From positions 12,725 through 76,724 of the forward strand of contig NIVC01000678.1 in NCBI GenBank assembly GCA_002269645.1: a DNA stretch of 64,000 nucleotides, in the 5' to 3' direction. The stretch comes from Macrostomum lignano (taxonomy: Eukaryota). The position numbers and the translations under genes are program-made. Each line of letters begins with the position of its first letter. Within the stretch, counting starts at the first letter, position 1. Shown here piece by piece: positions 3,156 to 60,951 of the stretch. Under the pieces are notes generated by a model. The model was not told the DNA's origin. It saw only the letters and a list, made by a program, of their open reading frames with translations, and did no database searches.

Positions 3156-3953
3156 TCAGAACACCTGCTGGCACTCGCAGATGAAAGCTATGGTCGAATC
3201 GCAAGCAAAGTCGTCAATTCCATTTGTAAACCCGCTAAACAGAGCCGTGCAGGCCTGGTCTGGGAATCCATTGTCCGGCTGTCCTTTACCTTTGTCCCAC
3301 ACGTGCTGGCTGATTGACAGGTTGCAGTCTGCCCAACGCCAGCCGTCAAGTTTTATGGTGTTGGCCGAAGCCTGACTGCCGCCCAGGTAGTAGTCCAATG
3401 CCCCCATCTCAGGAGTTGTCAGGCTTAGATTTGTCAGTCGCATTAGATAGGCCGCTTCGTCAGTATCGATTGCGTCAGCCAACTTGGTTAAGCCCGGATC
3501 TAAATTGCAATGCAGATGAGCATTCGCCCAGGTGGCTGGCGATTTGCTCACCAGCTTGTAGGCGGTGCCGTGCAGAGTGTGCTCGTATCCGGGCGGACAC
3601 AGGCGACCCGGAGGTAGGCCGGGTAGAGACCTCACATACACAGTCACCTGACGAGTGCAGCTCGGCACAGACTGCACCCGGTGACTGCACGCATCGAACA
3701 GGAACAGCTTGCACTGACAGGCGCTATCAGTCAGCAGTCGGAAGGCCTGACACTTGTTCTTCCTAGCGCAGGCGATGCTGCACTCTAGCGGAGTGCACAG
3801 ACCCGGCACAGTCTGGGTGAAGCTGGCGTTCACGCAGTCCAGTCCAACAGTTTGATGGAATGCCCTCCTGTGCTGCTCGCTGCAGGACTCCGAAAGATTC
3901 ACCGCTGTGCTTAGCAGGTGCAGCAGAATCGTTCTGATGATGAAGAGCGACAT
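3156..3953 (-). CDS. Secreted PAN/Apple-like + C-type lectin domain protein, intronless, 265 aa
   Basis: Hydrophobic N-terminus. Apple-like Cys spacing (LECSIACARKNKCQAF..C.L). CTLD motifs CPPGY, TWANAHLHC, YYLGG, GWRWAD, GQPDNG..C, IDDFAC..FICE. Confidence 0.85.
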   Translation of the reverse strand: MSLFIIRTILLHLLSTAVNLSESCSEQHRRAFHQTVGLDCVNASFTQTVPGLCTPLECSIACARKNKCQAFRLLTDSACQCKLFLFDACSHRVQSVPSCTRQVTVYVRSLPGLPPGRLCPPGYEHTLHGTAYKLVSKSPATWANAHLHCNLDPGLTKLADAIDTDEAAYLMRLTNLSLTTPEMGALDYYLGGSQASANTIKLDGWRWADCNLSISQHVWDKGKGQPDNGFPDQACTALFSGFTNGIDDFACDSTIAFICECQQVF

Positions 3954-5671
3954 TTTAGTCAGAAGGGTGCAAAAATTTATCGGAGGCCGTGTGACTCTGT
4001 CTCGGCTTTTATTGACTGATTAATTTTACTCGATTTTTCCTGTAAAACTGAGTCAATACTTGACCGATGCAAAGCCTTCCACTAGCTATTGTCCTATTGT
4101 CGTCCAACTTGGTAATCATCTAACAATGAATTTTTCCATTAGCTAGCGCTTCTTTCATCGCAAACACAATAGACATGGCCTGTCGTCATTCTGCTTTTTA
4201 TTAAAAATTTTCCCCCGTCTTATCAATGAATAGCGATCCGTGACCGAATCCTGTCTAAAAAATTGCAATAAAATGTTGGATTATTTGCCAATCAACTTTT
4301 CAGTGCAACTGCTAGCTCGCTCAGATAATTGACACTGGCATTGTCTGTATCCCTACTGTCTGTATTTGAATTGGATCTTGCCAATGATTGACAGAGTCTG
4401 TTTAGAAAATTTTCCCTGTTCATGGAAAAAATATGGCTGTACTACTGACATCAATCAACAGGAGAAAATCTTGACTTTCGCTGCAGCAATAGTAGGATCT
4501 GCGGCTTGTAATGATAGTTGAGGCTGAGAATTTAGCACAGACTTGGACAAAAAGGGCTGGACGCGCAATCTGGGCCTGGTGAAATGTGGTGCTGGGGCAC
4601 TCACAAAACACTTCTATGTAGCAATATTATAATAGTATAGTACCTAATGATAGCGAATCTACAGAACAGGCGTAAGGACGCGCTAGCCTTTACTGATACG
4701 GTACGGTAGCACAGTCCTGGCAATTCCAAAGGAGGAACACAGAAAAGGCAGCGCTTACCGGTCAAGTCACGTGAATCTCATATATCGTATATCTTTTATC
4801 TCGGGAAAAATCTCTTACTCGTATGTTCTCTTCGAAGAGATTCGCACTAGTTCTCTTAGTTTTTATATAACTCAACTTGACTTTTCAAGCTAAAATCGGA
4901 CGAAAACCAGAGTTGACTCAAACCCCGCAGAGTCGGCCAACATGTACCCAAAAAAGAGAGCATAAAAGACAAAAAACACAACCAATCGGCGTGGCCCGCA
5001 GGGCAGAGCTGACCAGCCAGGGAAGGGCAGAGCCAATCAAAGCACACAAAGGGGTGGGGCCTAAAGCCCCCTGCCAGAGGACACGGCCCCCAACCCCCCA
5101 ACCAGTCGGTACTGGTCTGGAGCAGCCGGTCCCGACAAACAAACAAAACAAGCAGTGCGCCTGCACTACAAAAGAACTGTTTTCCCAAACCATAAATTAA
5201 CTGTTTAAGTCTCTGGTACATTGCTGCATAAATGGCATTGCTGGCATCACATTCAAAGGCAACAAAAAGATCTTCGGATCTGTAGTAGTGATTCAAAGAA
5301 TACAAATTACAAACGGTTGCTACACAATTTGACACATCAATTTTAATCTTTAACAGATCCTTGGAATTTCTTCAGTCAGAGGCTGGCAAAATTCTGTTTG
5401 AAAGGGCAGCGTCAGACATAGCCAGATACTCGTAAAATGAGCGACTTCTGCAAAGCCGACATGAAAGACCAAATGTTCCAAAGCCAAGCGACATGTTTTA
5501 TATAATAATGGATCACAAGTGTACTTCCATTAAGTTTGTTAGTTTGCAACCAGCAATCTGTTAGGCCCATTCCGTTCGTACTTCTGAGCCACGTGGCTTC
5601 TGAGGGTGTACAGCAGCTCTGACTTTCTTTTCGTTGGGCATGCACGCTGTCTTTAGATAGCTAGCTCGTAG

Positions 5672-13586
<7,915 letters not shown>

Positions 13587-23597: not shown

Positions 23598-25271
23598 TTG
23601 AAATTTTTTTCGTTGGAAACCGAAAAACAACGGAATCCAGAACTGGAAAAACGAAAAGAAACCGCAATGCAGGACTTGGTCATGCCTACAGGCACGACAA
23701 TCAGGTCACAGGAGACGCAAACGTCAAACAAGGTGGCGACTCCAAATGAACAAACAATGGAACCAGTTTGTACGATCCCGATGAGTGAAGCAAGCGTGAA
23801 GACAAACACGACCATAAGAAGGCGAACTATGGAGAACAAGATGGTCGAAATGAGAGCGAACACAACAATAGCGCCAAGACAAACCCTACGAATCTGGCCA
23901 ATGATTCTGATGGGACTGCTCATTTTTGCCGGAAGTTTCTGCGAAATCGAAGCGATGCAAACGGAAGGTACGCACACGCAATATGTGGACAGTCCAAAAT
24001 TTCGCACCGACATTGGAGCCCCCATAGCAATTCGGCTGCCGGAACAACAGGACTGCAAAATTCCAAAGGAAGGACAAGACGGACGGATAAAGCTTAAATT
24101 AACTTTACACGATGAGAACGCCGAGACACATAAAAGTGTCATGAAGATATGCCACAGAGAAGACTACAGTTTCACAGCGCAACTGTACAAAATCGCAGGA
24201 AAAACAGTATTCGTGGACTTGACAGTAGCGATTAAGCCACGAACAGTCACAGTGGAACAATGTAACTCGTGGAATGCAGGAGCTACAACAGAAGATGGAA
24301 CATTGGAAGAAGACCTCAAAGTGGATGGTCGCATCAGCCGATACTCTACGAAAAAATGGGTTCGAAATGACCTAGATAATCTGGCTAAGACCGGAGAGAA
24401 ATTAGAAATAACAGTCAGCACTGTGTTGACGAATGTACCATACTACGTTTCGGAAAATGGAATGAACTCGTTGTATGTGCCAGTAGACAAATGCAAATAC
24501 AAGGAGAGCAAGTGCCAACGGGACGAGAAAGCGGCAAATTTTAAAATATGGCCACTAGAACGCACTTTACCAGAACGACTTTGGTCAGTGACAAACTTCT
24601 ACGACAGAGAATATCGAGTGCGAGGTTCAAGACTGTACCAGATGGTATGGACAGTGCATGAACATTACCAATGCCAGTACCAGAAAGGACGACAACTGGT
24701 CGGATACATGCACACGGACTGGTTTCAATCGGAAGATATGACATACGTGCTAACCTTTCAGAGACCAGTAAAACTGAATGCATCATGTGCAGAAGACAAG
24801 TATACTTTATACAAGGCGGAAGCTCTAAGATTAGCTCGAGAAATCGCCAGACACAATCTACAGCAAGCACAAAAGCGAACGCACAAACAAGCCAACAAGG
24901 GGCGACAGCAAACGACTCTACAAGTAGGTGACAGAGTCATGCTACAAGAACCACTAAGAACTGCAAAACATCAACCACAATTTTCGGGACCGTATAGAGT
25001 GATTCGGAAACTCAACGAAACGAATGTAGCCATCCGATCGGAAGACAATAACAAGGAACCAATGCGGGTACACGTCGACAGATTAAAAAAGATGCAGAAC
25101 CCGGAGGAATCTGTTTTCTTGCCCGATTTCCAACCGACGGACCCCAGAAGAATGGCACTACAGCAGAGGAAGCCGCTATATAGAACAATTGGCACGCAAG
25201 TCTCGGATGAACTGGAAGAGCATCCCGCTCATGCATACAACTTGCGGAGCAGGGACAAAATCCAACACTAA
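23598..25271 (+). CDS. Retroelement ORF: hydrophobic signal-like segment + Cys-rich glycoprotein-like region fused to an integrase C-terminus
   Basis: IWPMILMGLLIFAGSFCEIEA, then a Cys-spaced ectodomain-like region, then REIARHNLQQAQ..LQVGDRVML..FSGPYRVIRKL..VHVDRLKK..YNLRSR. Confidence 0.75.
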   Translation: MKFFSLETEKQRNPELEKRKETAMQDLVMPTGTTIRSQETQTSNKVATPNEQTMEPVCTIPMSEASVKTNTTIRRRTMENKMVEMRANTTIAPRQTLRIWPMILMGLLIFAGSFCEIEAMQTEGTHTQYVDSPKFRTDIGAPIAIRLPEQQDCKIPKEGQDGRIKLKLTLHDENAETHKSVMKICHREDYSFTAQLYKIAGKTVFVDLTVAIKPRTVTVEQCNSWNAGATTEDGTLEEDLKVDGRISRYSTKKWVRNDLDNLAKTGEKLEITVSTVLTNVPYYVSENGMNSLYVPVDKCKYKESKCQRDEKAANFKIWPLERTLPERLWSVTNFYDREYRVRGSRLYQMVWTVHEHYQCQYQKGRQLVGYMHTDWFQSEDMTYVLTFQRPVKLNASCAEDKYTLYKAEALRLAREIARHNLQQAQKRTHKQANKGRQQTTLQVGDRVMLQEPLRTAKHQPQFSGPYRVIRKLNETNVAIRSEDNNKEPMRVHVDRLKKMQNPEESVFLPDFQPTDPRRMALQQRKPLYRTIGTQVSDELEEHPAHAYNLRSRDKIQH

Positions 25272-33120: not shown

Positions 33121-35240
33121 TCAAGAATCCGCCGCCGCAGCGCATGCCGATCCCGAGCAGCCGCGCCTGGCGCCGGCGCTACCGCAGCATTGGGCGCGAT
33201 TACGCCCAGCATCAGTAAGCATTCGCTGCTGCTGTTGCTTAGCCGAACAAGCCGAGGATTTGCCAACAGCCAGCCGGGGATTGCCGGAGTTCAAGCCGTC
33301 CAGCAGCACGCAGGCTTTGCACACTGGCTGGCTGCTGACGTAGCCGCACAACCGGCAGGTGTCCAGCTCCGGCATTCGAGCATCGGTACGGAATCGAATC
33401 TGTTCAGCGGCCTGGATAATGTGCAGCAGAGCGGCCGGCCTGGCCCGCTCCAGATCCTTCACCAGAGCCCTGGCGTGGCCCCTGTAGGCAGCCGGGGCGT
33501 ACAGGCACTCGGTGGCGAAGTAGTCAAGCCGTTTGAAATAGGCGTAGAGCACGATCTCCTTCTCGTAGGCGTACTTTAACGGCTTGCAGCGGGCCGGCAG
33601 GCCGCCGCCCGTGTGGGTGACGCCGTCGGCGCAGCGGGACAGCCTGGCCGCGTCGCCACGCAGGAGGTTCATCACGACGGTCTCGGCCACATCGTCAGCA
33701 TTGTGACCGGTGGCCAGTTTGTCAGCTTTAAGATGACCGGCGCCTCTGTCCAGGGCCTGGCGACGGAACACGCCGCAGAAGGTGCAATTGCTGCGCCGGC
33801 CAGCGGCCCGGACAACTTCGTCCATTGTCCAGCCGTACAGGTCGCGATAGGTGAAGATTGTGAGGGGCAGGCCGAGGCTGACCTGTACAATTTGATGGAA
33901 AAAGCCTGTTATACTACTTGATAATAAACAGCGTAAGTAGCTTTCTAATTTTATTTAACTTTTGATTCAATCCATAAGCTAAATTGTGAAGTTGATACCT
34001 GGACTTTAAAAGGTATTACCTGGGTTTCACAGGTGATACCTGGGTTGGACAGGTGATCCCTGGGTTTCACAGGCGATACCTGGGTTTCACAGGCGATACC
34101 TGGGTTTCACAGGTGACACCTGGATTTCAAAAGTGACACCTGGATTTCAAATGTGATACCTGGATTTCAAAAGTGACACCTGGATTTCAAATGTGACACC
34201 TGGATTTCAAAAGTGACACCTGGATTTCAAAAGTGACACCTGGATTTCAAAGGTGACACCTGGATTTCAAAGGTGACACCTGGATTTGAAATATGACACC
34301 TGGATTTCAAATGTGATACCTGGATTTCAAAGGTGACACCTGGATTTCAAAAGTGATTTCAAAAGTGATACCTGGATTTCAAAAGTGACACCTGGATTTC
34401 AAAGGTGACACATTGATTTCAAAGGTGATACCTGGATTTCAAAGGTGACACATTGAGTTCAAAGGTGATACCTGGATTTCAAATGTGACACATTGATTTC
34501 AAAGGTGATACCTGGATTTCAAAGGTGACACATTGAGTTCAAAGGTGATACCTGGATTTCAAATGTGACACATTGATTTCAAAGGTGATACCTGGATTTC
34601 AAAGGTGACACCTGGATTTCAAAAGTGATATCAAAAGTGATACCTGGATTTCAAAAGTGACACCTGGATTTCAAAGGTTACACCTGGATTTCAAAGGTGA
34701 TACCTGGATTTCAAAGGTGATACCTGGATTTCAAAGGTGATACCTGGATTTCAAAAGTGACACCTGGATTTTAAAAGTGACACCTGGATTTCAAAGGTGA
34801 CACCTGGATTTCAAAGGTGACACCTGGATTTCAAAGGTGACACCTGAATTTGATACAAAATGCTACACTGAGTTAAAACGATGACAAACCTCTGTGCGCC
34901 TCAGAGCGTCCAGAGAATCGTCCCGATAACCGGCAATGCCCTCATCAATAGCCAGCAGGCGCAGATCCAGCCCATAATTGTGCCTCTCATTTAGCGTCTT
35001 CAATAGGTAGGCCAGCACAGTGGAATCTTTGCCGCCGGATGCGCCAATAGCGACGCGTTCGCCGGGCGAGAACATCCGGCTGGAGACGATCGTGTCGTGA
35101 GTTTCAGCTTCGAATGCCCAGAAGAAGCAGTCGCGGCAGACTGCGTGGCCGGTTTTTGGCCGACGAAGCTGCGGCTTCTTCTCGCAGAAACGGCACCTGC
35201 GCTGCGGCTGCCGCTGCGGTTCAGCCTGCGGTGAGGCGGC
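33121..35240 (-). CDS. CTU1: Cytoplasmic tRNA 2-thiolation protein 1
   Basis: Exons 35240-34890 and 33882-33121, phase 0. CRFC..CRDC zinc site, PP-loop [32 protein letters not shown]-terminal CRLC..CKAC. No genomic in-frame ATG upstream of the zinc site. Confidence 0.95.
34015..34850 (+). repeat. 20-bp minisatellite CACCTGGATTTCAAAGGTGA in the CTU1 intron
   Basis: Direct reading; CACCT/AGGTG hairpin-capable unit. Confidence 0.95.
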
Positions 35241-35264
35241 CTGCAGTTCCAGAATGAGATGGCA

Positions 35265-36335
35265 TTGATGAGGCTGATGCTGGGGTGTGATTGATGAGGT
35301 TGATGCTGAGGCATGTGATTGATGAGGCTGATGCTGGGGAGTGATTGATGAGGCTGATGCTGGGGAGTGATTGATGAGGCTAATGCTGGGTGTAGAATAG
35401 ATGAGGCTGGTGCGGGGGAGTGATTGATGAGGCTGATGCTGGGTGTAGAATTGATGAGGCTGATGCTGGGGTGTGATTGATGAGGCTGGTGCTGGGGAGT
35501 GATTGATGAGACTGATGCTGGGTTGTGATTGATGAGGCTGGTGCTGGGGTGTGATTGATGAGGCTGGTGCTGGGGTGTGATTGATGAGGCTGGTGCTGGG
35601 TGTGATTGATGAGGCTGATGCTAAAGGTGTGGGATTGATGAGGCTGATGCTGGGGTTGGGATTGATGAGGCTGATGATGCAACATGTGATTGATGAGGCT
35701 GACGCTGGGGCATGTGAATGATGAGGCTGATGCTAAAGGTGTCGGATTGATGAGGCTGATGCTAAAGGTGTCGGATTGATGAGGCTGATGCTGGGGTGTG
35801 GGATTGATGAGGCTGGTGCTGGGGTGTGATTGATGAGGCTGGTGCTGGGGTGTGATTGATGAGGCTGGTGCTGGGGTGTGATTGATGAGGCTGATGCTGG
35901 GGTGTGGGATTGATGAGGCTTATGCTGGGGCATGTAATTGATGATGCTGGGTGTAGGATTGATGAGGCTGATGCTGGGGTGTGGGATTGAAGAGGCTGAT
36001 GCTGGGGTGTGGGATTGGTGAGGCTGATGCTGGGGTGTGGGATTGATAAGGCTGATGCTAAAGGTGTCGGATTGATGAGGCTGATGCTAAAGGTGTCGGA
36101 TTGATGAGGCTGATGCTGGGGTGTGGGATTGATGAGGCTTATGCTGGGGCATGTAATTGATGATGCTGGGTGTAGGATTGATGAGGCTGATGCTGGGGTG
36201 TGGGATTGAAGAGGCTGATGCTGGGGTGTGGGATTGGTGAGGCTGATGCTGGGGTGTGGGATTGATAAGGCTGATGCTGGGGCATGTGATTGATGAGGCT
36301 GATGCTGGGATGGGATTGATGAGGCTGATGCTTGA
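35265..36335 (+). repeat. 26-28-bp minisatellite GATTGATGAGGCTGATGCTGGGGTGT upstream of the CTU1 acceptor
   Basis: Direct reading. Confidence 0.94.
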
Positions 36336-37211: not shown

Positions 37212-40200
37212 TCAGGAGAAGAAATACTCGGACCGCAACACCTCGGACAGATCGAAGTCGCCCTTGTCGGGAATCTGCAGAATTCGAGAATTAAATCGCT
37301 TAGCAGCCTGCAGCTTCTGGCCGCTGAGGCTGGCCAATTCTGACTGACGAAATGAGAACACGCGATCAATATGCGAGCTGAGATCGGCTAGGATTGGCTT
37401 GCTGTGCAGCTGGACAAACTGCTGCCTACAGATCCTGCCCATGGCGTCCACGTCGCACGGATGCGTCCAGAAGCAGTCGTGCACCGCGGCAAAAGTGACG
37501 CCAAACTTCTGGCACTCCAATGCCGTTAGCATCATATGACACGAGTCGAGCGAGTGCACAAAATTAGGCGGAAACGCGTTGGACTGTTTGACCGGATCGG
37601 GCGGATACGGCTGCACAATGGGCAGGCCTAGCGGAGTTCGCCATTGGATTGAAGCCTGCCTCAGCTTGGCCACGTCCTTGGCCAGATCGGTGAACCAGTG
37701 CTGAATGTGGGTGGCGCTAGTGAAAATCCTGCCAATGCTGGACAGGGTCAGTTTAGCCAAATAGGCTGCTGCCTTGTGCCGCATCTCGCTAGGGAACTCA
37801 GCGTCCTTCAGCCTGGCCAGGATCTGCTGTATGGCGCCGTACTCCGTGACGCCGTAGACTGTGGTCATCACCGACTGCTTGATTGTGCGCCTAACTACGT
37901 AGCCTTGAAGCGACTGGGCAACCGCGTGACCTTGAGCGGCATCGGCTACTCTGGTAGACTCTACCAGATCTACAACAGCCTGGTAGACATCTTGCGGCCG
38001 GTCAACCGCTCGCAGATTGACAGCCAGAGCGCCGGCCACATCCCGGCCCATTGCGGCGTAGTGTTGCAGTCCGTTGCAGCTGCCGTCCTGGTGCACAGGG
38101 AACGAACTCACGTAGCGTTCCGGCCCGTCTGGATGCCTGGCAGCGGCGAGGATCTCAGAGCACGTGGCCAGAGTCTGCCAGGGAGCTTCGTCGTTCTGCC
38201 ACCAGCCGCGCCCGGTCCAGGGCCGTTCGGCGCTGTCGATGATATCCGGCAGCAGCGAGTCGGCCATGTCTAGCCGTTCGGCGTTTGTCAATTTTTTGCC
38301 AAGATCCGCCACATTGATGGCGTGAATGCGGAGCCAGCGCCAGCCGCGCTCGCCCAGAGGCTTGGCATTGTTGAAGCGAAGCAGCGAGCGGGACAGATCG
38401 CAGCTCATGTGGTTCAGATGGGGTGGCATTGGGTAGGCCCGGCCTCTGCAAAAGTTAATTTTACTTTTCGATACATATTGGCTTTTTGTGCAGTTTTGTA
38501 TTTTTCGATACATATCGGCTTTTTTGTGCAGTTTTGTATTTTTCGATACATATCGGCTTTTTTGTGCAGTTTTGTATTTTTCGATACATATCGGCTTTTT
38601 TGTGCAGTTTTGTATTTTTCGTTACATATCGGCTTTATTTCTCAGCCAGACGGTTCTCGAAAAATTCAAAGACAGACAGACAGCGCAAAACATATAGATT
38701 ATACTACGCTCGTAATTATAATAATTAATATATTATTACTAACCGACTACTCACCGAAAGTCCATATTATGCGGCAAGTAGAACGGCCGGTCCTTCAGCC
38801 AATCGGCAATGGACAGCCGGTAAAGCTCCGTGCACCAGAGAGAATAGCGCTCCCTTTCAGCTTTGCGCTCGGCCGCTTTCTCCCGGCGTAGGGCGGCAAT
38901 GTCGGCCCTCGACGCGCCCGGAGCCGGAGGCGCCAGGCGCTCTACAGATCGGGGTCGGGCAGGCAGCGCCAGGTGCTCGGCGCCGCCAGAATTGAAGCGG
39001 TCAGTTATCAAGCGGAGCATGGCTCTGTCAACTCGCCAGGCGCAGGAGCTCACGGTCTGGTCGCGGTTGTTGGGGAGAATTCAATTGATAGGATTAGCGC
39101 GTGAAAAAAGAAACAGATAAAATGAAATATAGGACTGTTTGAGTGTGAATATGGGGATGCTTAAGGAATTTGCAGCAGTATTTAGAAGTATGCATTGTAT
39201 AGTAGTATAGGTTTCTGGGAAGAATCAAATTTAGTGGATTCTGAGTCTGAGATGATGCTGATTTAAAGGATTCGGGGATAATGCAGATTTAAAGGATTAT
39301 GAGATGCAAATTTAGAGGATTCTGAGTCTGAGATGATGCAGAATTAGAGGATTTTAGGATGACGCCGGTTTAGAGAATTCTGATATGATGCAGATTTAGA
39401 GAAGATTCTGGGATGATGCAAGCAGATTTAAAGGATTCTGGGATGATGCAAGCAGATTTAAAGGATTCTGGGATGATGCAGATTTAAAGGATTCTGGGAT
39501 AATGCAGATTTAAAGGATTCTGGGATAATGCAGATTTAAAGGATTCTGGGATGATGCAGATTTAAAGGATTCTGGGATGATGCAGATTTATAGGATTCTG
39601 GGATAATGCAGATTTAAAGGATTCTGGGATGATGCAGATTTATAGGATTCTGGGATAATGCAGATTTATAGGGTTCTGGGATGATGCAGATTTATAGGAT
39701 TCTGGGAGGATGCAAATCTAGAAGATTATGGAAAGATGTAGAACTAGATGATTTTGAAGAATTAAAACCAATATATACTAAAACAGACGAAGCCAAGAAG
39801 CCACAGATATTCTAATTGGCTAAAGAAGAAATCAAGTGACATGGAAAGCAAGAAAATAAGCTAACTCATACTCACATGCAGTGCCTCAAGAACAGTCGGG
39901 GGCGGCCCAGACAGTCGGATTTCGCTCATCTGGGCCAGGGCATATTGCCTTAGCAATTCCGTATTTAAGGTCATGTAGCGAGCTGGCCAAAAAGGCTTAG
40001 TCAGCATTGGCAGCTTGGATGGCTGGAACATCAGCTTGGTGGCATCCTGCGCCTGCTGAAATGCTTTAGCGACTGTCGGATGAGCCCGGATGTGCTGCAC
40101 GTTGCTATCGGGATCCAGAACTCCGTACGTGGCCGGCACGCCTCGATAAGTGAGCTGGGCCAGGTGATCGGTCAGGTATTTGCCTAATTCGATGCGCCAA

Positions 40201-43200
40201 TGACGGGGCAGAGGCGGCCAGCCCAGGTCACCAGTTTCACGACCCAGCTCCTGGGGAATTATGGGAATTATTCGTATTGCAATTAATTGCTCGAAGCTTA
40301 GATGCCACCACTTTTAACATTTAGATGACAGCTGATTGAGGATTTCTTTGATGTAAGATCCCATCTACTGAGTGGATACTTACTGCGAATCTAAAATCCT
40401 ATTTTTTAGGATCCCACTACTTAAGATCCGACGATATCCGACGATATAAGATACTATCAGCTTAGGATCAGACAGATCTAAGATCCCATCAGTTTAGGAT
40501 CAAACAGATCTAAGATCCCATCAGTTTAGGATCAGACAGATCTAAGATCCCATCAGTTTAGGATCAAACAGATCTAAGATCCCATCAGTTTAGGATCAGA
40601 CAGATCTAAGATTCCATCAGCTTAGGATCAGACAGATCTAAGATCCCATCAGTTTAGGATCAAACAGATCTAAGATCCCATCAGTTTAGGATCCCACAGA
40701 TCTAAGATCCCATCAGCTTAGGATCAAACAGATCTAAGATTCCATCAGCTTACGATCAGACAGATCTAAGATCCCATCAGCTTAGGATCCCACAGATCTA
40801 AGATCCCATCAGCTTAGGATCAGACAGATCTAAGATCCCATCAGCTTAGGATCAGACAGATCTAAGATCCCATCAGCTTAGGATCAGACAGATCTAAGAT
40901 TCCATCAGCTTAGGATCCCACAGATCTAAGATCCCATCAGCTTAGGATCCCACAGATCTAAGATCCCATCAGCTTAGGATCAGACAGATCTAAGATTCCA
41001 TCAGCTTAGGATCCCACAGATCTAAGATTCCATCAGCTTAGGATCCCACAGATCTAAGATCCCATCAGCTTAGGATCCCACAGATCTAAGATCCCATCAG
41101 CTTAGGATCCCACAGATCTAAGATCCCATCAGCTTTCCCATCAGCTTAGGATCCCACAGATCAAAGATCCCATCAGCTTAGGATCCCACAGATCTAAGAT
41201 CCCATCAGCTTAGGATCCCACAGATCTAAGATCCCATCAGCTTAGGATCCCACAGATCTAAGATCCCATCAGCTTAGGATCCCACAGATCTAAGATCCCA
41301 TCAGCTTAGGATCCCACAGATCTAAGATCCCATCAGCTTAGGATCCCACAGATCTAAGATCCCATCAGCTTAGGATCCCACAGATCAAAGATCCCATCAG
41401 CTTAGGATCTCACAGATTTAAGATCCCATCAGCTTAAGACCCGCTACTAGAGGACCCAGCCATGGAAAATCCCATTGCAAAGAAGTGTAATCAAAGCAGC
41501 ACTGACCGCTCTAGCTTTGCGCTGAATTTTTTCATAGAACAAATCCGTCAGATCCCGCATAAAGTGAGGCTTTGGCATGTACTGCACAGCCTGTATAGAG
41601 GCCAGCATCACAGCCTGGCTGAGCAGAAACTGTACAGTCTCCTCTTCATCAAGCGCAATCACCAGCGGATAGATGGTCCGCCTAGCGGTTCTCTCGTCTC
41701 TGACTTTCAACTGACGCCGACGCTCCGGCACCAGGCGGCGCAGCTCGCGCAGCCAGTGGTCGCGCACCGCGGCGGCCTCTTTGGCTGCCTGACGCCGAGC
41801 CGCAGGCGTCACGGCCGGCAGAGGCTCTGAGACGCAAACGATGGACACAGCGGGTTCGGACTGCTCCAGCTGTGAGGTAGGAATGATTTATTTCAATATA
41901 TAAGGGGTTGCAGCCTAGTGGTTAAAGCGTCGGACTCGCGACTGAAAGGTCGGGGGTTCGATTCTAGACTCACTTAGAACAATTGTGTCCATGAGCAAAA
42001 GACACTTAACTCTGCATTGCTTCAGTTCACCCAGCTGTAAAATGGGTGCCAGCATTAGTTGGGGTAATTGACGGTGTGTGTGGCGACCCCCCCCCCCAGT
42101 CCTGAGCTGTCGGTTGCTTATCTGCCTATCAGGGCAGGTGTAATCAATTAATTTTATAGTATCGGAATAATAAACCAATCAGACTACTTTGCAGTTAGTG
42201 TTAATCAGTAGTGCTGGAGACATTTTCTCATTTATTCTGATTAATATGACAGCTAACAAAAGTCATGTTAACCTGCTCAGAAACTGGTCCTGGCCGGTAA
42301 CACTTGCAGAGGCCCACAGCCTACAGAAAGAACTTACAGACAACTGAAGCGCTCGGTCCCCAGCGCTGTTGTCCTCGGGAGCAACAGACTCCGATTGCTG
42401 CTTTGTCGATAAAAGCGAAGGAAGCCCAGCCAAGCGCAGACCAGCCATCAGCTCAGCATCCTGAGCTTCATCCGATAATTGATTTTGCCAATTGGAATCG
42501 GCCGCCAATCTTACTGTTAATTCGGCAACCTCGGCGCTGTTTAATCTGCCGGCTGCGCGTAGGCCGAGCGCCACCGCGCCTGCGCTCAACTGCTGACCAT
42601 CGCGAGCGGCGCCGGCCAAGGTGGACAGGCTGGCCGAGAGGGTGGGCCGGTGCAGCAGGATGGCGGCCGGGATCTGCGAGGGTAAAGTGCGGTAGACCGG
42701 CATGTAAGAGCAGTCCTGGGGACGCTTCTGAGTGGCGGTTGACTCTAAACGTGTAGGGTCTGGAGACAAGATTCTCAATGGTAGTCTAGGGGCGATTCTC
42801 AATGGTTGTCTAGGTTCGATTCTCAATGGTAGTCTAGGGGCGATTCTCAATGGTAGTCTAGGGGCGATTCTCAAGGGTAGTCTATGGGCTATTCTCAATG
42901 GTAGTCTAGGGCGAGTCTCGATGGTAGTCTTTGGGCGATTCTCAAGGGTAGTCTATGGGCTATTCTCAATGGTAGTCTAGGGCGAGTCTCGATGGTAGTC
43001 TTTGGGCGATTCTCAAGGGTAGTCTATGGGCTATTCTCAATGGTAGTCTAGGGGCGATTCTCAATGGTAGTCTAGGGCGAGTCTCGATGGTAGTTTTTGG
43101 GCGATTCTCAAGGGTAGTCTAGGGCGAGTCTCGATGGTAGTCTTTGGGCGATTATCAAGGGTAGTCTAGGGGCGATTCTCAATGGTAGTCAAGGGCGATT

Positions 43201-51057: not shown

Positions 51058-51881
51058 TTACTCAGATTTTGGGTCATCTCCATCAACAACTTGGCGCCTC
51101 CGCTTGTTGTACAGCTCGTAGACAACAACAATGACCAGAATGGCGACAATTTCGCAGCCAATCGCCACGAGCGGAGTCAGGAAGCTCAGCGGACTCTTCA
51201 CCCGCAGGAACAGCCTGGCGGTGTTCTCTCCGTACCTGTTTTTGGACGCGCAGGTGATGTAACCCCTGTCGGCTTCGTAGCTGACAGAGCTCAGGTAGAG
51301 CGTATTGTTATTTGTCAAATTGAACGCCGGGTCTACAGACTTCGCCAGCGAATGTCGCCCATCGGGTTGCCTTCGACCAGGCACAGTATTGCCACGCTTT
51401 CTCCGGGCCACATCGCCACGTCGTACTCGTTCGCCCCGTCCACCTTCATCGTCAGGAGCGGCGCGGACAAGAATCGGCCAGTGGCGGAAGCCGTCTGGTT
51501 GACAATGCAGACAAAGTTAGTGATGTCAGACTTGACCGGGTAGTTGATGTTGAGCACCGAGGTACCAGAGAGGCCATTGTCAGCCAGTTTTGTGTCAACG
51601 GTGATTCTGGCGTCAACGGTTGCGCTGGAGTTGGAGTTTTCCAAACGCCAGAAGAAACTACTCGGGCTCAGCACCCCAGAGCTGCTGGCCCTGCAGGTAA
51701 TGGCCAGACGTTTCAGCTTGCCAAGGGTGTACCTCTCGCCTGTTGAACTGCCAGAGTCTTTAAGACTCACCGAAACGTCGTCTACAGTAACATTGATGTG
51801 CTGAGCGGACACCACAGCAGCCAGCAGGAGCTGCAGGACAGCGGCAGCAATCGGGCTCTGGCAGGCGAACATTATCGACAT
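51058..51881 (-). CDS. Basigin/neuroplastin-like two-Ig-domain type I membrane protein; intronless, with a 1-nt frameshift near 51342
   Basis: Signal peptide; Ig1 (ITC..FFW..FVC); Ig2 (ILC..GNP..W | ..YITC..N.YG); TM LTPLVAIGCEIVAILVIVVVYE with the intramembrane Glu typical of the basigin family, then KRRR. Split across ORFs 51333-52031 and 51058-51411. Confidence 0.8.
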
Positions 51882-53392
51882 CCGGGCTGCAACTGGCTTC
51901 GATCGGGAAAAAAATTCTGGCTCTGCCGGAGCAGAAAATTGCGTCAAAATGAAAAATAAGGGGGCAACTGGAAAGAGAGGAGATGAGCAAGCCAGTGAGC
52001 GATGAGGCTCGGTTGGCTTTATACTGGGCAAAGAAATCTGCCCACTTCCCGCCCGCCTCCTCCGTCTACCTGCCTAAACTCGTTTCCCAACTTCCCATTT
52101 GACTCGGGGCGGTTCATTACCGAGCGGAAACTGCCATTGGCCGTGCAGATCTAGAGGATATTTTTCTGCGCAGAACGCACACCCTGATACGTCCTGTTCG
52201 CTTAGGAGAGAAAATCAAAGAAAAGGGAACAAGGGATAGACCAATGAAGGGGAAATGTCTTCACCTATGCATATTGTCAAGCAACTGCCTTTTTACCGCG
52301 TTTTCTATCCCTTCCCCAGCTCTCCAACAGCCGATGCAGAGTGGCACGCCGGTCTGGTCAGACTCCGACCACTTTGTGCCGCTTTGAACCAGCGAGATCC
52401 GCCTCGCCACAGGGCTCTCTGTCCTCAACCACTCCACCTCAGCGTCCAGGATAGGAAAGCAATAGCACGCCACGTACTAGGGGGTCAATAGAGACTCAAT
52501 AGAGAAATAATACAGACAAGCGGCTGAATTTGCAGTCTGGACGAACAGAAATGTTTGTGGCTCACATTCCTACATTGTCAATTGGAATGATTAACTGACT
52601 TATCTATTAATAACCCTTTATTAAAAATCTATCGCTTAAACTTTAAATGTCACATCAGTCACGGAGCCCTTAGTTTTCAAAACTGGTATTGGATTTTTTT
52701 ACCTTATTGAAATCGGGCTTAAACATCTATTTCCATGCTATAATGGATCAGAATTCTCAACCTGCTCGCCTTTTTCCGTCGATGTCTATGGGCAAGACCG
52801 AATCTACTGCCTGCCAAATGGGATTTTCAACTTGGTTGGACTTACTATCAACTTGCCTGACAAAAGCAATGTTAGCAGAAAGGAGCTAAAAATAACTTTA
52901 AAATTGTTGAACACAAAAGAACATTGAGACCTAACGGGCGTTCAAACTTTCGCCCAATTCAGTTCTAGAACTGGTTGGAACAGCATTTTTTTCCCGAAGG
53001 GGCAGCAGCAGTTTGTGTGCGTGAGAATGTTTCACTGTACAGTTTTAATTTTTACCTCACTGAGAGCTTTAGCAGCAACGCAATATTGTGTATGAATTGG
53101 TGAGAGAAGGTGAGAGAGAAAGCCGCCCCTGCTCCCATGGTTTCCGAGAGGGTGGGGGCCGACCAGGGCAGATACGCTGAGAAACGGGCATTGTACAGTT
53201 CAGAACTAGCTGCACAGCGGGGCTAGAGAGTACACCCATGTCCAAACCCACGCTAGCAAGCTGCATGCCAGCGAAGTACAGTCGGGCGAGTAAAACAGTT
53301 GCTGGGCATGCAGTTTAGCTGACTGATGCAGCTGAAATCGACAAGAAGACTCTACTTTGGTCACAATACATGCCGCTGAATCCGATAGCGTC

Positions 53393-56071
53393 ATGTACAA
53401 GCGCTTCGTTCGCGAGTCCTCAGAACTGGAGCCCTTCCGAGCTCAATGTGAGTCCTCCGGCGCCCACGGCAATCCAGAAGTCGACGATCTGTGGGCCCGA
53501 ATCGACGCGCGCAACCGTCGGCAGGCTTTCCAGACTGCCGCGCAGGAGCCAAAAATTGCTGGTGGCTCCTCCGATTTGAACGCGGCGGCACGGGCGCGTT
53601 ACCAATGGGGCACCGTGCGAATCTTCATCTCGTCCACATTCAAGGACTTCTTTGCTGAGCGCGAGAGTCTGGTCAAGCGGGTTTTCCCCAGCCTGCGAGA
53701 GTGGTGCGAGAAGCGCAGGATTGCCCTATACGACTACGACCTGCGATGGGGAGTGCCAAAAGACAGCACAAGCTCCGAAGCAGTTCGCACCTGTCTCGAA
53801 CTGCTCGATCGCTGCCAGACGGAAGCTGGCGGGCGCGTCTTCTTTCTGGGCCTGGTTGGCGACCGATTCGGCTGGGTGCCCGGGCCTGCTGACCTTGACG
53901 AGGAGCTGCAGCTTCAGTATGACTGGACGTTCGGCAGCTCGGTGACGCAGATGGAGGTCGTGCACGGCGCCATGGCGAAGCTGAGCCCCAACGCGCTCTT
54001 CATGGTTCGCGACTCGGCCTGCTACGCGGATATTCCGGACGCTCAGCGCAAGGACTTTGTTGAGCCAGCCGGCTCCGTCACCGCTCGTCACGTAGCTCGA
54101 CAGAAGCTGGAGTTAGCCAAGCGGTTCCCGCCAAGCCAGGTGCGCCTGTACTCGGTGCGCTACGCAGGAAGTGTCAAAGAGGGCAAGCGCGAGCGCGTTC
54201 AGTTCTCCGGCTTTGAAGAATTCGAGCGGCAAGTGCTGACCTTCTTTCAGAAAACAATTGCAGCAGAGTTTCCGCTGCACGTGGCCAGTGAGCCGCCAGA
54301 GGAGCCGGTGACTTCTAGTGAGAAGCCGACATCAGAAGCGGCAAGCGACAGTGGCGAGTCGAATGAGACCCACATCTGCTACATGTTTGCCCTGGCTGGC
54401 AATGCTCAGGGTCAGACGGCTTGCCTGAACTTGATGCGGGACTTTGCATCAGCCGACGATCCCGATGCCAGCAAGCTGCCGCCACTTTTTGGGGACCTGG
54501 AGGAGGCCAGCGAGACATCCGGCCTGAGGGCTCTGGCGATCTGCGGCGACACTGGGGCCGGGAAAAGCACAGTTCTGGCACGGCTGGGCCAGCTCTTCGT
54601 TGACAAGAAAGGCTTTGATGTGATGGCGCACTTTTCGCAGTTCAGTCCGACCTCAGGCGACGCACAAGCGCTTCGAAAGAAGCTAAGAGACTTTTTCCTT
54701 GACTTCGTGCCAAAAGAAAATGTGACTGCCATAACGAAGGATACAAGCGTTGAAAACATATTGGAATTGGTGTCCAAAATTACGAGTCGACGATTTATTG
54801 TTCTGATTGATGCCTACGAGTGCTTCTTCGAGTCCAGCCACCCCCGAGACCTGCTGCCAGCTGCCTGGCCAGCAAATGTTCGCTGCATCCTCACCTGTCA
54901 CAAATCGGAGGCGGCTCGCTGTTTCGGCGATCGAGTTGTGCACCTGTACAACCTGGAGCCTCTGGAGCCGGAAGCTTGTCGGGCTGTGTGCCGCGGCTAC
55001 CTGGACGCGTTCGGCAAGCGTCTGGACGCGGCGCAGCTGACCTCCCTGCTCGGCAAGGCCAGCGCCACCAACCCGCTCTGGCTGACGCAGGCCTGCGAAG
55101 AGCTGCGCGTATTTGGCGACTACGCGGCTCTGTCGCAGATGATCGCCAATTTCCCGGACGACACGCACGAACTTCTAAAAACCATCGGTGCTCGAATTCT
55201 CAAAGACGACAAACCGGACGGTCTGGTGGCCACCCTGCTATCGCTGGTCAGCGTCTCGCGCGTCGGCCTCTGGGAGAAGCACGCGAGACGGTTGCTCCAT
55301 TTTGCGTCCAATGGGCAGGAGACGAAAGACGAGAGCGAAAACGATGAAGTGCCCCTTGCGGAGTACCTGAGGCTCCGGCGGGAAACCAAAGCTTTTCTGC
55401 GTAGCATCGCTCGTGAGTCCACCTGTTTGACCTTTCAGCACCGAGCCTCGCGCGCCGCGGTACAGGAGCTGCTCCTGGCAGAGCCCGAGGCTGTCATCCG
55501 TTGGCACAGCCTCGTGGCCAACTTCATCTTGTCTAGGCTTCGGAATGGCTTTGACGCTGTGTTGTCTCGTGACCTGCCGCATCACCTGTACTATTGCGAC
55601 CGAAGGTCAGAGCTGCACAAGATCCTGTCATTCGACCAGAGCAGCAGACACATCGCTATTCGCATCCCGACCATCACGTCAAGCTACGTTTACAATTCTT
55701 GGCGCTGTCGCCAGGTGAAGGTGACGCCGGAGAGCAAGCAGGCTTCATTGGTGGTGTGCACCTTCTGCAAGAACCTGCCAACTCGAGTCGGCACTCTGAG
55801 GTCGGCCGGCTGCGCCTACTGCGGCATGATGATCATGCGGGGCCACTCGGTGCCAGCGGGCACCTGCCAGATGCACCAGGCCCCACATGCCAGCATGCTT
55901 CGCTGTTGGTTCTGCGGCAGGACTGACTCAAACGCAGCGCAGTTGTCGATCTGTTCGATGTGCAACAACATGTCCAGCCCGATGTGGTGCTGCCAGCCCG
56001 TATTGGAAACTGACAGGCAGTTCCGATTTCTTCAGCGTGGTCAGACTAAGCGGTCAAATCTGTTTTTTTGA
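53393..56071 (+). CDS. Intronless DUF4062 + NACHT/STAND NTPase (TEP1/NWD/NPHP3-like) with a C-terminal Cys-rich zinc module
   Basis: VRIFISSTFKDFFAERESL..DLRWGV (DUF4062). Walker A GDTGAGKS at ~54545-54568; Walker B FIVLIDA. TEP1-like LGK..ATNPLWL..ACEELRVFG. First in-frame ATG at 53393. Confidence 0.9.
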   Translation: MYKRFVRESSELEPFRAQCESSGAHGNPEVDDLWARIDARNRRQAFQTAAQEPKIAGGSSDLNAAARARYQWGTVRIFISSTFKDFFAERESLVKRVFPSLREWCEKRRIALYDYDLRWGVPKDSTSSEAVRTCLELLDRCQTEAGGRVFFLGLVGDRFGWVPGPADLDEELQLQYDWTFGSSVTQMEVVHGAMAKLSPNALFMVRDSACYADIPDAQRKDFVEPAGSVTARHVARQKLELAKRFPPSQVRLYSVRYAGSVKEGKRERVQFSGFEEFERQVLTFFQKTIAAEFPLHVASEPPEEPVTSSEKPTSEAASDSGESNETHICYMFALAGNAQGQTACLNLMRDFASADDPDASKLPPLFGDLEEASETSGLRALAICGDTGAGKSTVLARLGQLFVDKKGFDVMAHFSQFSPTSGDAQALRKKLRDFFLDFVPKENVTAITKDTSVENILELVSKITSRRFIVLIDAYECFFESSHPRDLLPAAWPANVRCILTCHKSEAARCFGDRVVHLYNLEPLEPEACRAVCRGYLDAFGKRLDAAQLTSLLGKASATNPLWLTQACEELRVFGDYAALSQMIANFPDDTHELLKTIGARILKDDKPDGLVATLLSLVSVSRVGLWEKHARRLLHFASNGQETKDESENDEVPLAEYLRLRRETKAFLRSIARESTCLTFQHRASRAAVQELLLAEPEAVIRWHSLVANFILSRLRNGFDAVLSRDLPHHLYYCDRRSELHKILSFDQSSRHIAIRIPTITSSYVYNSWRCRQVKVTPESKQASLVVCTFCKNLPTRVGTLRSAGCAYCGMMIMRGHSVPAGTCQMHQAPHASMLRCWFCGRTDSNAAQLSICSMCNNMSSPMWCCQPVLETDRQFRFLQRGQTKRSNLFF

Positions 56072-56864
56072 AACTGAAAATTTTAATTCGGTGTTTTTTG
56101 AGTGGAATGACACCTTCAAAGTGAGCAAATAAACAATTCCATTAACCTTCATTTAATTAACCCACTCTTGTTTTTATTTTAACGCAAATCTGCACAGTTC
56201 CGTCTGAAATAAAATGACCTTCGTTGTCCGCTAATTTTCTTAACGAGGCTGCGCACTAATTGCATCGAGTCATGTCTAGCCTATAGTCTTGTCTGCACTC
56301 GCTATGAAGAAGATAAAGCGATCCGACAACTGTAATTAAGGTGAGAACTCCGCGCTCACGCAGGTCTCCCTGTCACGCATTCGGTGACTGCATGGCATTC
56401 AGAATCCCTATTGGGGATAATGGGCTTGTTAAACGAAGCTTCAAATGAGGACACTGCTGCCATCTAGTCTGTCCATTTAAGTCGGAAAACTGTTCTCGAG
56501 TGATGGACAAGGAGGTGGATTTCAAACGAACTTTCTTTCCTGCCCCTTCTACTGATTAACAGTGGGATTACCGGCTTATGCAGAGCTGCTCAATACTCCT
56601 TTGTGAAGAAAATGCTTCTCACTAACTTTTTCGACTTAAGAAATGTTGCACAGCTCGTACTGGGTGGGGATGGGAATCCATGAGTCTTCTATTCTCACCG
56701 AGGCTGCACTCATGCGCTAAACTCTGCAGTTTTGTTAAGAGACGCTCTATTGCAAGCAAAGACAGATAAAAATACTTACTACCTGAGTAGCTTAAATGAG
56801 TCATATTCCTGAGTAGTTTAAAAGCGTATCATGATTACACGCAGTTGTATATTTGCGTCCTGGG

Positions 56865-57240
56865 TAGTTTTAATGTCGCATCCTTAGTAGCTCTAATCTC
56901 GCATCCTGGGTAGCTCTAATCTCGCATCCTGGGTAGCTCTAATGTCGCATCCTGGGTAGCTCTAATCTCGCATCCTGGGTAGCTCTAATCTCGCATCCTG
57001 GGTAGCTCTAATCTTGCATCCTGGGTAGCTCTAATCTCGCATCCTGGGTAGCTCTAATCTCGCATCCTGGGTAGCTCTAATGTCGCATCCTGGGTAGCTC
57101 TAATCTCGCATCCTGGGTAGCTCTAATCTCGCATCCTGGGTAGCTCTAATCTTGCATCCTGGGTAGCTCTAATCTTGCATCCTGGGTAGCTCTAATGTCG
57201 CATCCTTAGTAGCTCTAATCTCGCATCCCGAGTAGCTCTA
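56865..57240 (+). repeat. 23-bp minisatellite CATCCTGGGTAGCTCTAATCTCG
   Basis: About 15 copies, intergenic. Confidence 0.95.
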
Positions 57241-59092: not shown

Positions 59093-60951
59093 CTAAGTAA
59101 TAAAAGCGGTCACTGCGGCTGCTATGCTAGCATTGCATTTCGGACACCGGGTCAGCGGCTCCAGGCAGCGGTCGCACAGGAGGAAATGCGCGCAGGGCAG
59201 CGTGACCCGGTTCCTTGTCCGGTTGCGGCACCGGATGCACCGATCGTCAACTTCCGATTCGCCAGCCGGATCGGACAGATCCGTGTTTGCTGGGCCGCCG
59301 CCGCCGCCAAAACCAACTATTGCTGAGACAGACGAGGCTGCGAAGCTGGGCACCGCGTATGCGTCGACTGAGGATCCTCCACCGCCGCGGCCGGCACTAC
59401 CGTCGTGAGACGCCGAAGTCTCGGAGCCGCCAGCCGCAGGGTCAATCAAGCAGGAGTCGATCAGGCGGCGCAGGTCGAACCGAGCGGCAACAGCCGGAGC
59501 TCTGGGATCGGCATCTTCAACAGACTGCGCCAGGCGGAGCAGATCGCCCGGCCGCTCGATGCCGGAGCTGCCGCCGCCGCTAGCCGTGGAGGCGGCGCTG
59601 CGCAGGAACTGCCTGGCCAGGCAGACCTGCAGAAACGCCGGATCGAAGCCGTACGAAGCGGCCGCGCCAACAACCGGCGAGTCCAGCAGTAAGCGGAGCC
59701 GCCGCGTCGAGGGCAGGTGAAGCCGGACGGCGGAGTCGGCGGCTGACGGCCACTCGGCTGAGGTGGACGGCGCCGAGGCGAGGCTGACAAGCCGGGCGGC
59801 GAGACAGTCGGGCCGGTGCTGCTGCTGACTGGCCAGGCCGGCCTCTGCCTCACAGCAGAAGCAGATCAGTAGCCCAGATTCGTTGGCAAACCAGCCAGAC
59901 GAGGCGAGGGCCTCGCGGGTGGACTCGTCAACACCAGCCAGTCGCTGCGTGGTGGCCAAACGGTCAGCGTACAGCAGCCAGCCAGTGCGGGCGGACGAAG
60001 ATATGATCATCAGCACGATGACTGCAGGGGATATTGCAGAGGAATAACTGTGACCATGTACGATAACAATCCCAAATCTAATAGTCTGTGATCCCGAATC
60101 TATTAGTCCATGATCCCAAATCTAATAGTCTGTGATCCCGAATCTATTAGTCCATGATCCCGAATCTAATAGTCCATGATCCCGAATCAAATAGTCCATT
60201 ATCCCGAATCTAATAGTCCATGATCCCGAATCAAATAGTCCATGATCCCGAATCTATTAGTCCATGATCCCGAATCTAATAGTCCATGATCCCGAATCTA
60301 ATAGTCCTTGATCCCGAATCTAATAGTCCTTGATCCCGAATCTAATAGTCCTTGATCCCGAATCTAATAGTCCTTGATCCCGAATCTATTAGTCCATGAT
60401 CCCGAATCTAATAGTCTATGATCCCGAATCTAATAGTCTATGATCCCGAATCTAATAGTCCTTGATCCCGAATCTAATAGTCCTTGATCCGGAATTTAAT
60501 AGTCTATGATCCCGAATCAAATAGTCCTTGATCCCGAATCAAATAGTCCTTGATCCCGAATCAAATAGTCCTTGATCCCGAATCTAATAGTCCTTGATCC
60601 GGAATATAATAAGTCTCCATCCAGAATCTAACAGTCCCCGATCCGTGCCATTATTACGTTTTTAATTCTAGAATCTAAAAAGCCTGTTCAAAGAGAGAAA
60701 TCCCACAAAAAGCTAGATTTTAAACTTCGAAATAAAAAATTTAATGAAACAGTAAAGCTGTTACAGAAAGCTTGGGTCAGAGAAGAAGCAATCCTTGCTT
60801 TATAGCGCTACAAAAATACACCACTTCACCGCTTACCCGTTATTCCAACGCGTCGATTTTCGCTCAGAGCCAGAAACGCTGCACGGAATTGAGCCGGGTT
60901 TGGCGAGCCAATGACATCTTTAAATAATGCTGAGACAACTTCTTCAGACAT
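59093..60951 (-). CDS. IAP-like protein: degenerate BIR, UBA-like segment, C-terminal RING; two exons
   Basis: Exons 60951-60837 (G|GTAAG) and 60021-59093, both phase 1. RLATT..LASSGWF..CFCC..H.PDC; YGFD..LQV.LARQF; RING CIRC..LPCAH..CDRC..CPKC...I..F at the C-terminus. Confidence 0.82.
60065..60645 (+). repeat. 22-bp intronic minisatellite ATCCCGAATCTAATAGTCC(A/T)TG
   Basis: Direct reading in the IAP-like gene intron. Confidence 0.94.

Follow-up and report, generated by a model that had tools for sequence, protein, structure and literature searches.

What kind of receptor results when the repeat array that usually ends a NACHT-type STAND protein gives way to a small cysteine-rich module? 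The question is raised by a single-exon gene in a 64,000-nucleotide stretch of contig NIVC01000678.1 (assembly GCA_002269645.1), which we analysed as a whole and call the window. NIVC accessions denote the Macrostomum lignano genome Mlig_3_7 (PMC5730564), and the window is therefore flatworm nuclear DNA. The gene encodes 892 residues in which a DUF4062 domain, now renamed NIR, is followed by a NACHT-type NTPase, a linker and a tail rich in cysteine. A first-pass annotation of the sequence had described an intronless DUF4062-NACHT reading frame with a repeated Cys pattern at its end, and had proposed that a knot like that of the spliceosomal protein PHF5A replaces the usual repeat sensor. The frame and the pattern are exactly as described, at 53393-56071. 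Our preferred reading, which we put at roughly 60%, is that this is an intact, functional-looking gene from an ancient choanoflagellate and animal STAND family built of NIR, NACHT and a PHF5-like zinc tail, and that its product would act as a sensor-triggered NADase. The NIR-NACHT STAND class is already known; what is new is the putative sensor domain, which is undescribed.

A probable NADase head on a STAND switch

The Pfam model of DUF4062 (PF13271) matches residues 76-163 of the 892-residue protein with 35.9 bits, against a gathering score of 24.7. A phmmer search of PDB sequences matched residues 72-282 to a crystal fragment of human TEP1 (11gz_A, E=3.5e-25), the closest solved relative of the domain. 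DUF4062, as NIR, has been shown to be a TIR-like NADase; in bacteria NIR serves as effector in Avs and other anti-phage systems, eukaryotic NIR proteins are mostly NLR-like with an N-terminal NIR, and TEP1, the sole human member active in vitro, requires residue E1008 for an activity that increases with protein concentration (bioRxiv 10.64898/2026.09.04.749371, 10.64898/2026.05.01.722283). The position equivalent to E1008, E188 in the window protein, is Glu in all 28 aligned family members, and the equivalent of TEP1 R976, here R158, is likewise conserved (28 of 28). The head is probably an enzyme that destroys nicotinamide adenine dinucleotide (NAD+). The first-pass annotation had missed that NIR is a demonstrated NADase fold, which provides the effector half of the mechanism discussed below.

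As in TEP1, a NACHT domain follows NIR, and the orthologs that share the tail are named 'telomerase protein component 1-like' by NCBI. Unlike TEP1, the window protein has no TROVE, vWA or WD40 domain (Pfam, E<=10), and it ends in a putative zinc module of ~100 residues. TEP1 is about three times as long.

Within the switch region of the window protein, Pfam NACHT scores 18.5 bits, below its gathering score of 26.7, and AAA_16 and nSTAND5 are likewise sub-threshold (residues 352-537); in the orthologs, NACHT and NPHP3_N exceed their gathering scores. Both Walker motifs are intact in the window protein (Table 1). The alignment between the window protein and its orthologs spans ~89% of the protein and includes the linker between NACHT and tail, which by analogy is presumably a winged-helix or helical region.

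The same NIR-NACHT (NPHP3_N) core is found in NWD1/NWD2, NPHP3, TTC41 and the invertebrate 'TPR repeat-containing protein DDB_G0287407-like' proteins, which the homolog search returned as paralogs. NWD1/NWD2/NPHP3-type proteins are NLR-like NIR proteins (bioRxiv 10.64898/2026.09.04.749371, 10.64898/2026.05.01.722283). These paralogs carry WD40 or TPR arrays, whereas the family of the window protein has a repeat-free, Cys-rich end: Pfam found no WD40 or TPR domain in the window protein or in the tailed orthologs scanned. The premise that relatives of this protein normally end in such repeats was sound, as most other DUF4062-NACHT matches carry TPR or WD40 Pfam domains.

A conserved cysteine-rich tail

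The tail presents twelve candidate ligands, 11 Cys and one His, at C772, C789/C792, C807/C810, C825/H828, C838/C841, C854/C857 and C866 (which C867 adjoins), a number that could suffice for three zincs. The five pairs read CTFC, CAYC, CQMH, CWFC and CSMC, the fourth in the context RCWFCG, and the first Cys is followed by RQ. The closest non-self homologs, from coral, scallop, oyster, brittle star, crinoid, amphioxus and newt, are only ~30% identical to the window protein; they are 800-960 residues long, lack TPR and WD40 domains, and every one ends in the tail pattern. An alignment of 12 tails has 14 invariant columns, of which 12 are the ligands. When the alignment is widened to 87 sequences, mean column identity is 25%, ten ligand columns remain 100% invariant, and of the two lone Cys the first is kept in 85 of the 87 and the last in 86. 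The tail is thus a real conserved domain and not a chance cluster of cysteines. Most members stop ~5 residues past the last ligand. Loss of the first or last lone Cys is essentially never seen in the family, so co-loss gives no signal of ligation; the regular expression that selected the tail sequences moreover demanded the last Cys, which makes a co-loss test of shared ligation uninformative.

An exhaustive search of 1.84 billion representative proteins with the tail profile matched 120 clusters at E<=1e-3, of which 57 also pass E<=1e-10. The strict ligand regular expression is present in 96 of 116 profile matches, mostly ending within ~10 residues of the C-terminus. Ten long members were scanned with Pfam: eight have DUF4062 and a NACHT-type NTPase at E<=0.001, one has the NTPase alone, and one choanoflagellate protein has PH and DUF4062 domains with no NTPase match at that threshold. 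When the 12-sequence tail profile was used in a word-indexed homolog search, nothing was returned, because the module is too short and too diverse for such a search.

Named members come from the choanoflagellates Monosiga, Choanoeca and Hartaetosiga, from cnidarians, molluscs, Macrostomum, echinoderms and a hemichordate and, among chordates, from amphioxus, lamprey, bichir and reedfish, lungfish, frogs and newt; none of the tail-profile matches whose names were looked up is from an amniote or a teleost. In NCBI these proteins are labelled either as 'telomerase protein component 1-like' or as 'TPR repeat-containing protein DDB_G0287407-like'. Pfam has no model for the tail, and no paper on it emerged from literature searches, which included the name 'telomerase protein component 1-like' and the combination of PHF5 with NACHT. 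The family is ancient, shared by choanoflagellates and animals, and so far undescribed: widespread but unstudied. Its spread through choanoflagellates, cnidarians, spiralians, ambulacrarians, amphioxus, lamprey, bichir, lungfish and amphibians makes it a marker for early animal NLR-like immunity.

By analogy with STAND and NIR-STAND proteins, the zinc module would be the ligand-binding or autoinhibitory end of a switch. Binding of a ligand would free NACHT to exchange nucleotide and oligomerize; oligomerization would juxtapose the NIR domains, which could then hydrolyse NAD+, yielding ADP-ribose plus nicotinamide. The output might be NAD+ depletion or signalling, as for bacterial Avs-NIR systems and human TEP1. 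The anti-phage Avs2-NIR and NIR-STAND proteins of bacteria share the layout of N-terminal NIR effector, central STAND NTPase and C-terminal sensor (putative here), and their activation leads to NAD+ depletion. They differ in being prokaryotic, with repeat or terminase-sensing C-termini, whereas the window protein is eukaryotic and ends in the putative zinc module. The tails of the family are basic throughout (median isoelectric point, pI, 9.1; net charge +9), which is compatible with nucleic-acid binding and does not amount to a demonstration of it.

That DUF4062/NIR is a TIR-like NADase common to bacterial anti-phage systems and human TEP1 was demonstrated only in 2026. A small, rigid, highly conserved zinc module in place of a large repeat sensor would make this family an unusually simple case of a eukaryotic NIR-NLR; because there is a single small module, the search for a ligand, structure determination and mutational dissection should all be tractable. 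M. lignano, a transgenic model amenable to RNA interference, is well suited to the study of the family.

Several matches to the tail profile extend or blur the boundaries of the family. Three choanoflagellate proteins match it: P0229 (Hartaetosiga), P0198 (Monosiga XP_001748142.1) and P0224 (Choanoeca). Among choanoflagellate members, Pfam confirms DUF4062 only in the Hartaetosiga protein, which also bears an N-terminal PH domain and has no NTPase match at E<=0.001. The Monosiga protein is DUF4062-containing by its UniRef name, and its aligned sequence lacks a canonical Walker A. Entries P0122, P0123, P0129 and P0130 (Protopterus XP_043924600.1, 201 aa), together with ~50 representatives of 80-250 aa, consist of little beyond the zinc tail; they may be gene-model fragments from short contigs, or free-standing modules. 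In P0221 (501 aa), a weak match to the tail (E=3.6e-5), the ligand motif is N-terminal, with ankyrin repeats and a UBA-like domain after it; this may be another architecture in which the module occurs, or the match may be due to chance. Multi-copy matches (P0175, P0196, P0211, P0214, P0223, P0227) were considered as new architectures and judged to be false positives: they are multihaem cytochromes, EsV-1-7 Cys repeats and bacterial surface proteins, and P0223 has no Pfam match.

Resemblance of the tail to PHF5A and competing explanations

In PHF5A, 12 of 13 cysteines hold three zincs in a left-handed trefoil knot, with ZnF1 formed by CXXC motifs 1 and 4, ZnF2 by motifs 2 and 5, and ZnF3 by motif 3 and the first and last lone Cys (PMC5458519). 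The tail has its twelve ligands in the same linear order, a Cys, five CxxC/H pairs and a Cys, and is similar to PHF5A/Rds3 (PF03660) in size and basic charge. If the analogy holds, the tail would have three interleaved sites, {C789, C792, C838, C841}, {C807, C810, C854, C857} and {C825, H828, C772, C866}. The differences are also clear. One tail ligand is His, not Cys; PHF5A is a free SF3b subunit of ~110 residues whereas the tail is the C-terminal domain of an 892-residue protein; and PHF5A is nearly invariant (>90% identical across eukaryotes, from animals to plants), in contrast to the fast-evolving tail.

The strongest evidence for the resemblance is structural. An AlphaFold2 (AF2) run on the 12-sequence alignment reached a predicted local distance difference test score (pLDDT) of 48.7 and was discarded; the run on 87 sequences gave a tail model with pLDDT 87.2 and a predicted template-modelling score (pTM) of 0.78, the five models lying at 83-87. 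We compared this model by Foldseek with a library of 350,542 PDB chains. Eleven of the 30 top matches come from SF3b, U2 snRNP or spliceosome entries. Seven of these were checked as PHF5A or RDS3 (5gm6_J, 5zya_D, 6en4_D, 5ife_D, 5lqw, 6ff4, 7oqb); the other four (7q4p_G, 9k1w_D, 7qtt_D, 7dvq_6) are candidate PHF5A chains by length and complex alone. The eleven align over 91-111 columns with a query template-modelling score (TMq) of 0.41-0.48, a target score (TMt) of 0.47-0.55, a root-mean-square deviation (rmsd) of 3.4-5.5 Å and a probability of up to 0.69. All remaining matches, to ribosomal proteins, RING and LIM domains, have TMq <=0.26 and mostly an rmsd near 10 Å or half-length alignments, and no PDB family other than PHF5A/Rds3 aligns with nearly the full model. 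The negative control, a library of viral structures, gave a best TMq of 0.29 and a best probability of 0.09. As far as the predicted model goes, PHF5A/Rds3 is the closest structural relative of the tail, with ~12-17% identity in the structural alignments.

Profile comparison adds a fainter signal. Aligned by hhalign with a 49-sequence PHF5 profile, the tail scores 22.6 (P=7.5e-4), with motifs 2, 3, 4 and 5 and the last Cys in register with C30/33, C46/49, C58/61, C72/75 and C85 of PHF5A. Reversing either profile, which keeps the palindromic Cys pattern, lowers the score to ~11.5 (P ~0.15). When the non-Cys PHF5 columns are permuted with Cys and spacing fixed, scores average 13.6 +/- 2.5 with a maximum of 20.5, and none of 100 permutations reaches 22.6. 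Outside the Cys positions the shared preferences are modest: motifs 2 and 4 have hydrophobics inside them, Val stands at +7 of motif 2 and Pro at +6 of motif 4, and A-Y-hydrophobic comes ahead of motif 5. By these controls there is a small real signal between the profiles, below conventional significance and not a match by normal standards. Two sequence likenesses to PHF5A that the first-pass annotation had pointed to do not extend to the family. It had set CRQ at the first Cys beside CRKQ, and the Arg conserved in the family lies ahead of that Cys; it had set RCWFCG beside RCVICG, and Gly follows motif 4 in only 15% of members.

A number of results count against our preferred reading. As regards the head, the equivalent of TEP1 R908 is K84 here and is variable across the 28-member family alignment. 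Full-length human NWD1, NWD2 and NPHP3 are without NADase activity in vitro (bioRxiv 10.64898/2026.09.04.749371, 10.64898/2026.05.01.722283), and the presence of a NIR domain is therefore no guarantee of activity. As regards the tail, Foldseek returned nothing from the PDB at E<=1e-3: the E-values for PHF5A/Rds3 are weak (0.2-1.8) and a TM score of ~0.5 is borderline. Pfam PF03660 is absent at E<=10 from the window protein and from its last 156 residues; it matches one of 12 family tails at E=0.12, the same level as the noise from C1, DZR, RING and NinF. PHF5A and Rds3, both contained in the PDB library used for profile searches, were never listed at E<=10 with the 12- or the 87-sequence profile. 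The weak matches in those searches lay elsewhere, to the eS27 zinc ribbon over motifs 1-2 (E=0.006, 0.035) and to the PKC-theta C1 domain over motifs 3-5 (E=0.037). Probabilities from hhalign for the tail against PHF5A or the PHF5 profile are only 15.6%, 22.3% and 25.5%. Aligned globally, the probability is 1.3% and the N-terminal third is not aligned by sequence, because a long insert between motifs 1 and 2 throws it out of register. Finally, every inter-ligand loop is longer than in PHF5A (~95 against 75 residues from first to last ligand).

The idea of a PHF5-like knot in place of the repeat sensor is thus partly supported. A compact twelve-ligand module with the PHF5A ligand order is present, and PHF5A/Rds3 is the top, near-full-length structural match (TM 0.41-0.55); a significant PHF5 profile match, sought with Pfam, PDB profiles and hhalign, was not found. 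The link draws on a predicted structure and on hypothesis-driven controls, and it fails every conventional significance threshold. We lean slightly towards a PHF5-type fold for the tail, as predicted from the model, and hold homology with PHF5 to be the minority prospect. A bolder form of the proposal, which we offer as tentative, is that the tail is a true, anciently diverged PHF5-type knotted triple-zinc domain, the first outside the spliceosome, serving as the sensor of a NADase-armed, pre-animal NLR-like receptor; its ligand would plausibly be nucleic acid because the tail is uniformly basic. Were the knot confirmed, the PHF5A/Rds3 fold would no longer be confined to one protein family (PMC5458519), and a knotted zinc scaffold would prove reusable as a receptor domain.

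The rival that survives best, although we think it unlikely, is that the tail combines ordinary zinc fingers with no relation to PHF5, such as a zinc ribbon (motifs 1 and 2) followed by a cross-braced binuclear treble-clef, C1 or RING-like unit. The PHF5 likeness would then be a convergent C-(CxxC)5-C pattern and the tail most likely a docking or oligomerization domain, with NIR and NACHT working as we propose above. The eS27 and C1 matches fall where such fingers would lie and outrank PHF5A, the Pfam noise from C1, DZR, RING and other models equals the PHF5 level, and the non-significant Foldseek E-values, the divergent loop lengths and the low global hhalign probability all suit this explanation. 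Against it, the eS27 and C1 matches are themselves non-significant, the AF2 model lies on PHF5A/Rds3 over almost its full length at TM ~0.5 whereas zinc-ribbon, RING and LIM structures account for roughly half of its length at TMq <=0.26, and the PHF5 profile score exceeds both the reversed and the Cys-fixed permutation nulls.

Far less probable is a reading in which the tail has been integrated as a mimic or decoy of PHF5A, by means of which the receptor would watch over the SF3b spliceosome, factors that bind SF3B1, or pathogen effectors directed against these. Integrated decoys are known in plant NLRs, and for the tail this explanation can call on the fold-level likeness to PHF5A and the shared basic charge (pI 8.8 vs 8.8). 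A decoy would be expected to track the surface of its target, yet the tail has only the ~12-17% identity given above to a protein that is so highly conserved between animals and plants, and the module is ancient and freely diverging. Nothing links the window protein to SF3B1, and spliceosome sensing, raised in the first-pass annotation, was pure speculation.

The single-exon gene and its surroundings

The open reading frame runs from an ATG at 53393 to a TGA at 56069-56071 with no interruption, and an identical protein has been called as a single-exon gene on the same contig. An upstream TTG at 53357 could serve as an alternative start, giving 904 residues; in-frame stops lie further upstream. 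Table 1 lists the features of the gene.

Table 1. Features of the NIR-NACHT gene and its product, in window coordinates
Feature	Position	Strand	Basis or remark
Complete single-exon coding sequence of the DUF4062/NIR-NACHT-zinc-tail STAND protein	53393..56071	+	892 aa + TGA; coordinates confirmed by translation
N-terminal leader, aa 1-71	53393..53605	+	No match in Pfam or PDB; varies among aligned homologs
DUF4062/NIR (TIR-like NADase) domain, aa 72-282	53606..54238	+	TEP1 fragment match and Pfam PF13271
Codon of E188, equivalent of TEP1 catalytic Glu E1008	53954..53956	+	Window TQMEV aligned to TEP1 TEMEV
NACHT/NPHP3_N-type STAND P-loop NTPase, aa ~352-537	54446..55003	+	Sub-threshold Pfam NACHT, AAA_16, nSTAND5
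Walker A GDTGAGKS, aa 385-392	54545..54568	+	Sequence and family alignment; intact
Walker B FIVLIDAYE, aa 468-476	54794..54820	+	Sequence and family alignment; intact
Linker from NACHT to tail, aa 538-762	55004..55678	+	No match in Pfam
C-terminal Cys-rich module, aa 763-874	55679..56014	+	87-sequence alignment; AF2 model; PHF5A/Rds3 best structural match
Lineage-specific basic C-terminal extension, aa 875-892 (RQFRFLQRGQTKRSNLFF)	56015..56068	+	Low confidence in 12-sequence AF2 model
AATAAA, candidate polyadenylation signal	56128..56133	+	57 nt past the stop; sequence only

Orthologs, judged by gene span against coding length and by non-contiguous translation, are organized differently: the coral gene spans 10.7 kb and the crinoid gene 9.3 kb, and neither translates contiguously, so the ancestral gene had introns. 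Lack of introns had been taken as a hint of retroposition or recent assembly. The locus shows no retrocopy hallmarks, and it is most improbable that it is a functionless processed retrocopy, pseudogene or recently assembled chimera: its single exon, set against the long coral and crinoid orthologs, would fit such an origin, but the 892-codon frame is unbroken with the catalytic Glu, the Walker motifs and all twelve ligands intact, no genomic poly-A tract follows the AATAAA at the 3' end, a diverged M. lignano paralog that is also single-exon, at two loci, shows intron loss in the lineage to be old, and choanoflagellates share the three-part architecture, which therefore predates animals and excludes recent assembly.

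That paralog, P0216 (PAA56888.1, PAA78975.1; 884 aa), lies on contigs NIVC01000658.1 and NIVC01002561.1, with its coding sequence at 3001-5655 of each extracted locus (L004, L005). Its tail is 31% identical to that of the window protein and is missing the first lone Cys. The NIR motifs are degenerate (SSALAD, DLAEAL) and Pfam no longer calls DUF4062, and P0216 may be a regulatory or decaying copy.

Elsewhere the window holds ordinary eukaryotic genes and a retroelement integrase fragment. An open reading frame at 18628-20379 (+) has the N- and C-terminal domains of arginyl-tRNA-protein transferase (ATE1) and contains a 24-bp tandem array (18867-19720). A 557-residue frame at 23598-25268 (+) encodes an integrase p58 C-terminal domain and is probably what remains of a retrotransposon. 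On the minus strand are exons of a CTU1-like PP-loop tRNA thiolation protein with zn-ribbon_14 (33124-33825) and of a mitochondrial-type single-subunit RNA polymerase (37215-38513; PF00940, E=1e-139); both of these genes contain introns, in contrast to the NIR-NACHT gene. The nearest neighbours of the latter encode a small Ig-domain protein whose N-terminus is hydrophobic (51336-52031, -) and a C3HC4 RING-finger protein (59096-60016, -), neither of which shows any functional link to it.

About 30 unrelated minisatellite arrays are spread across the window, with units of 14-38 bp, lengths of 0.3-1.8 kb each and 83-99% matches, in addition to an (ACAG)153 array. Besides the array within the ATE1-like frame, they include those at 5692-6300, 7732-8372, 9074-9690, 11031-11970, 12382-13218, 14566-16361, 33989-34851, 35264-36332, 40436-41436, 56858-57240 and 60069-60644, among others. 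These arrays account for the extreme AT and GC skews of the window and for most of its long open reading frames without a Pfam match, such as that at 14969-16585.

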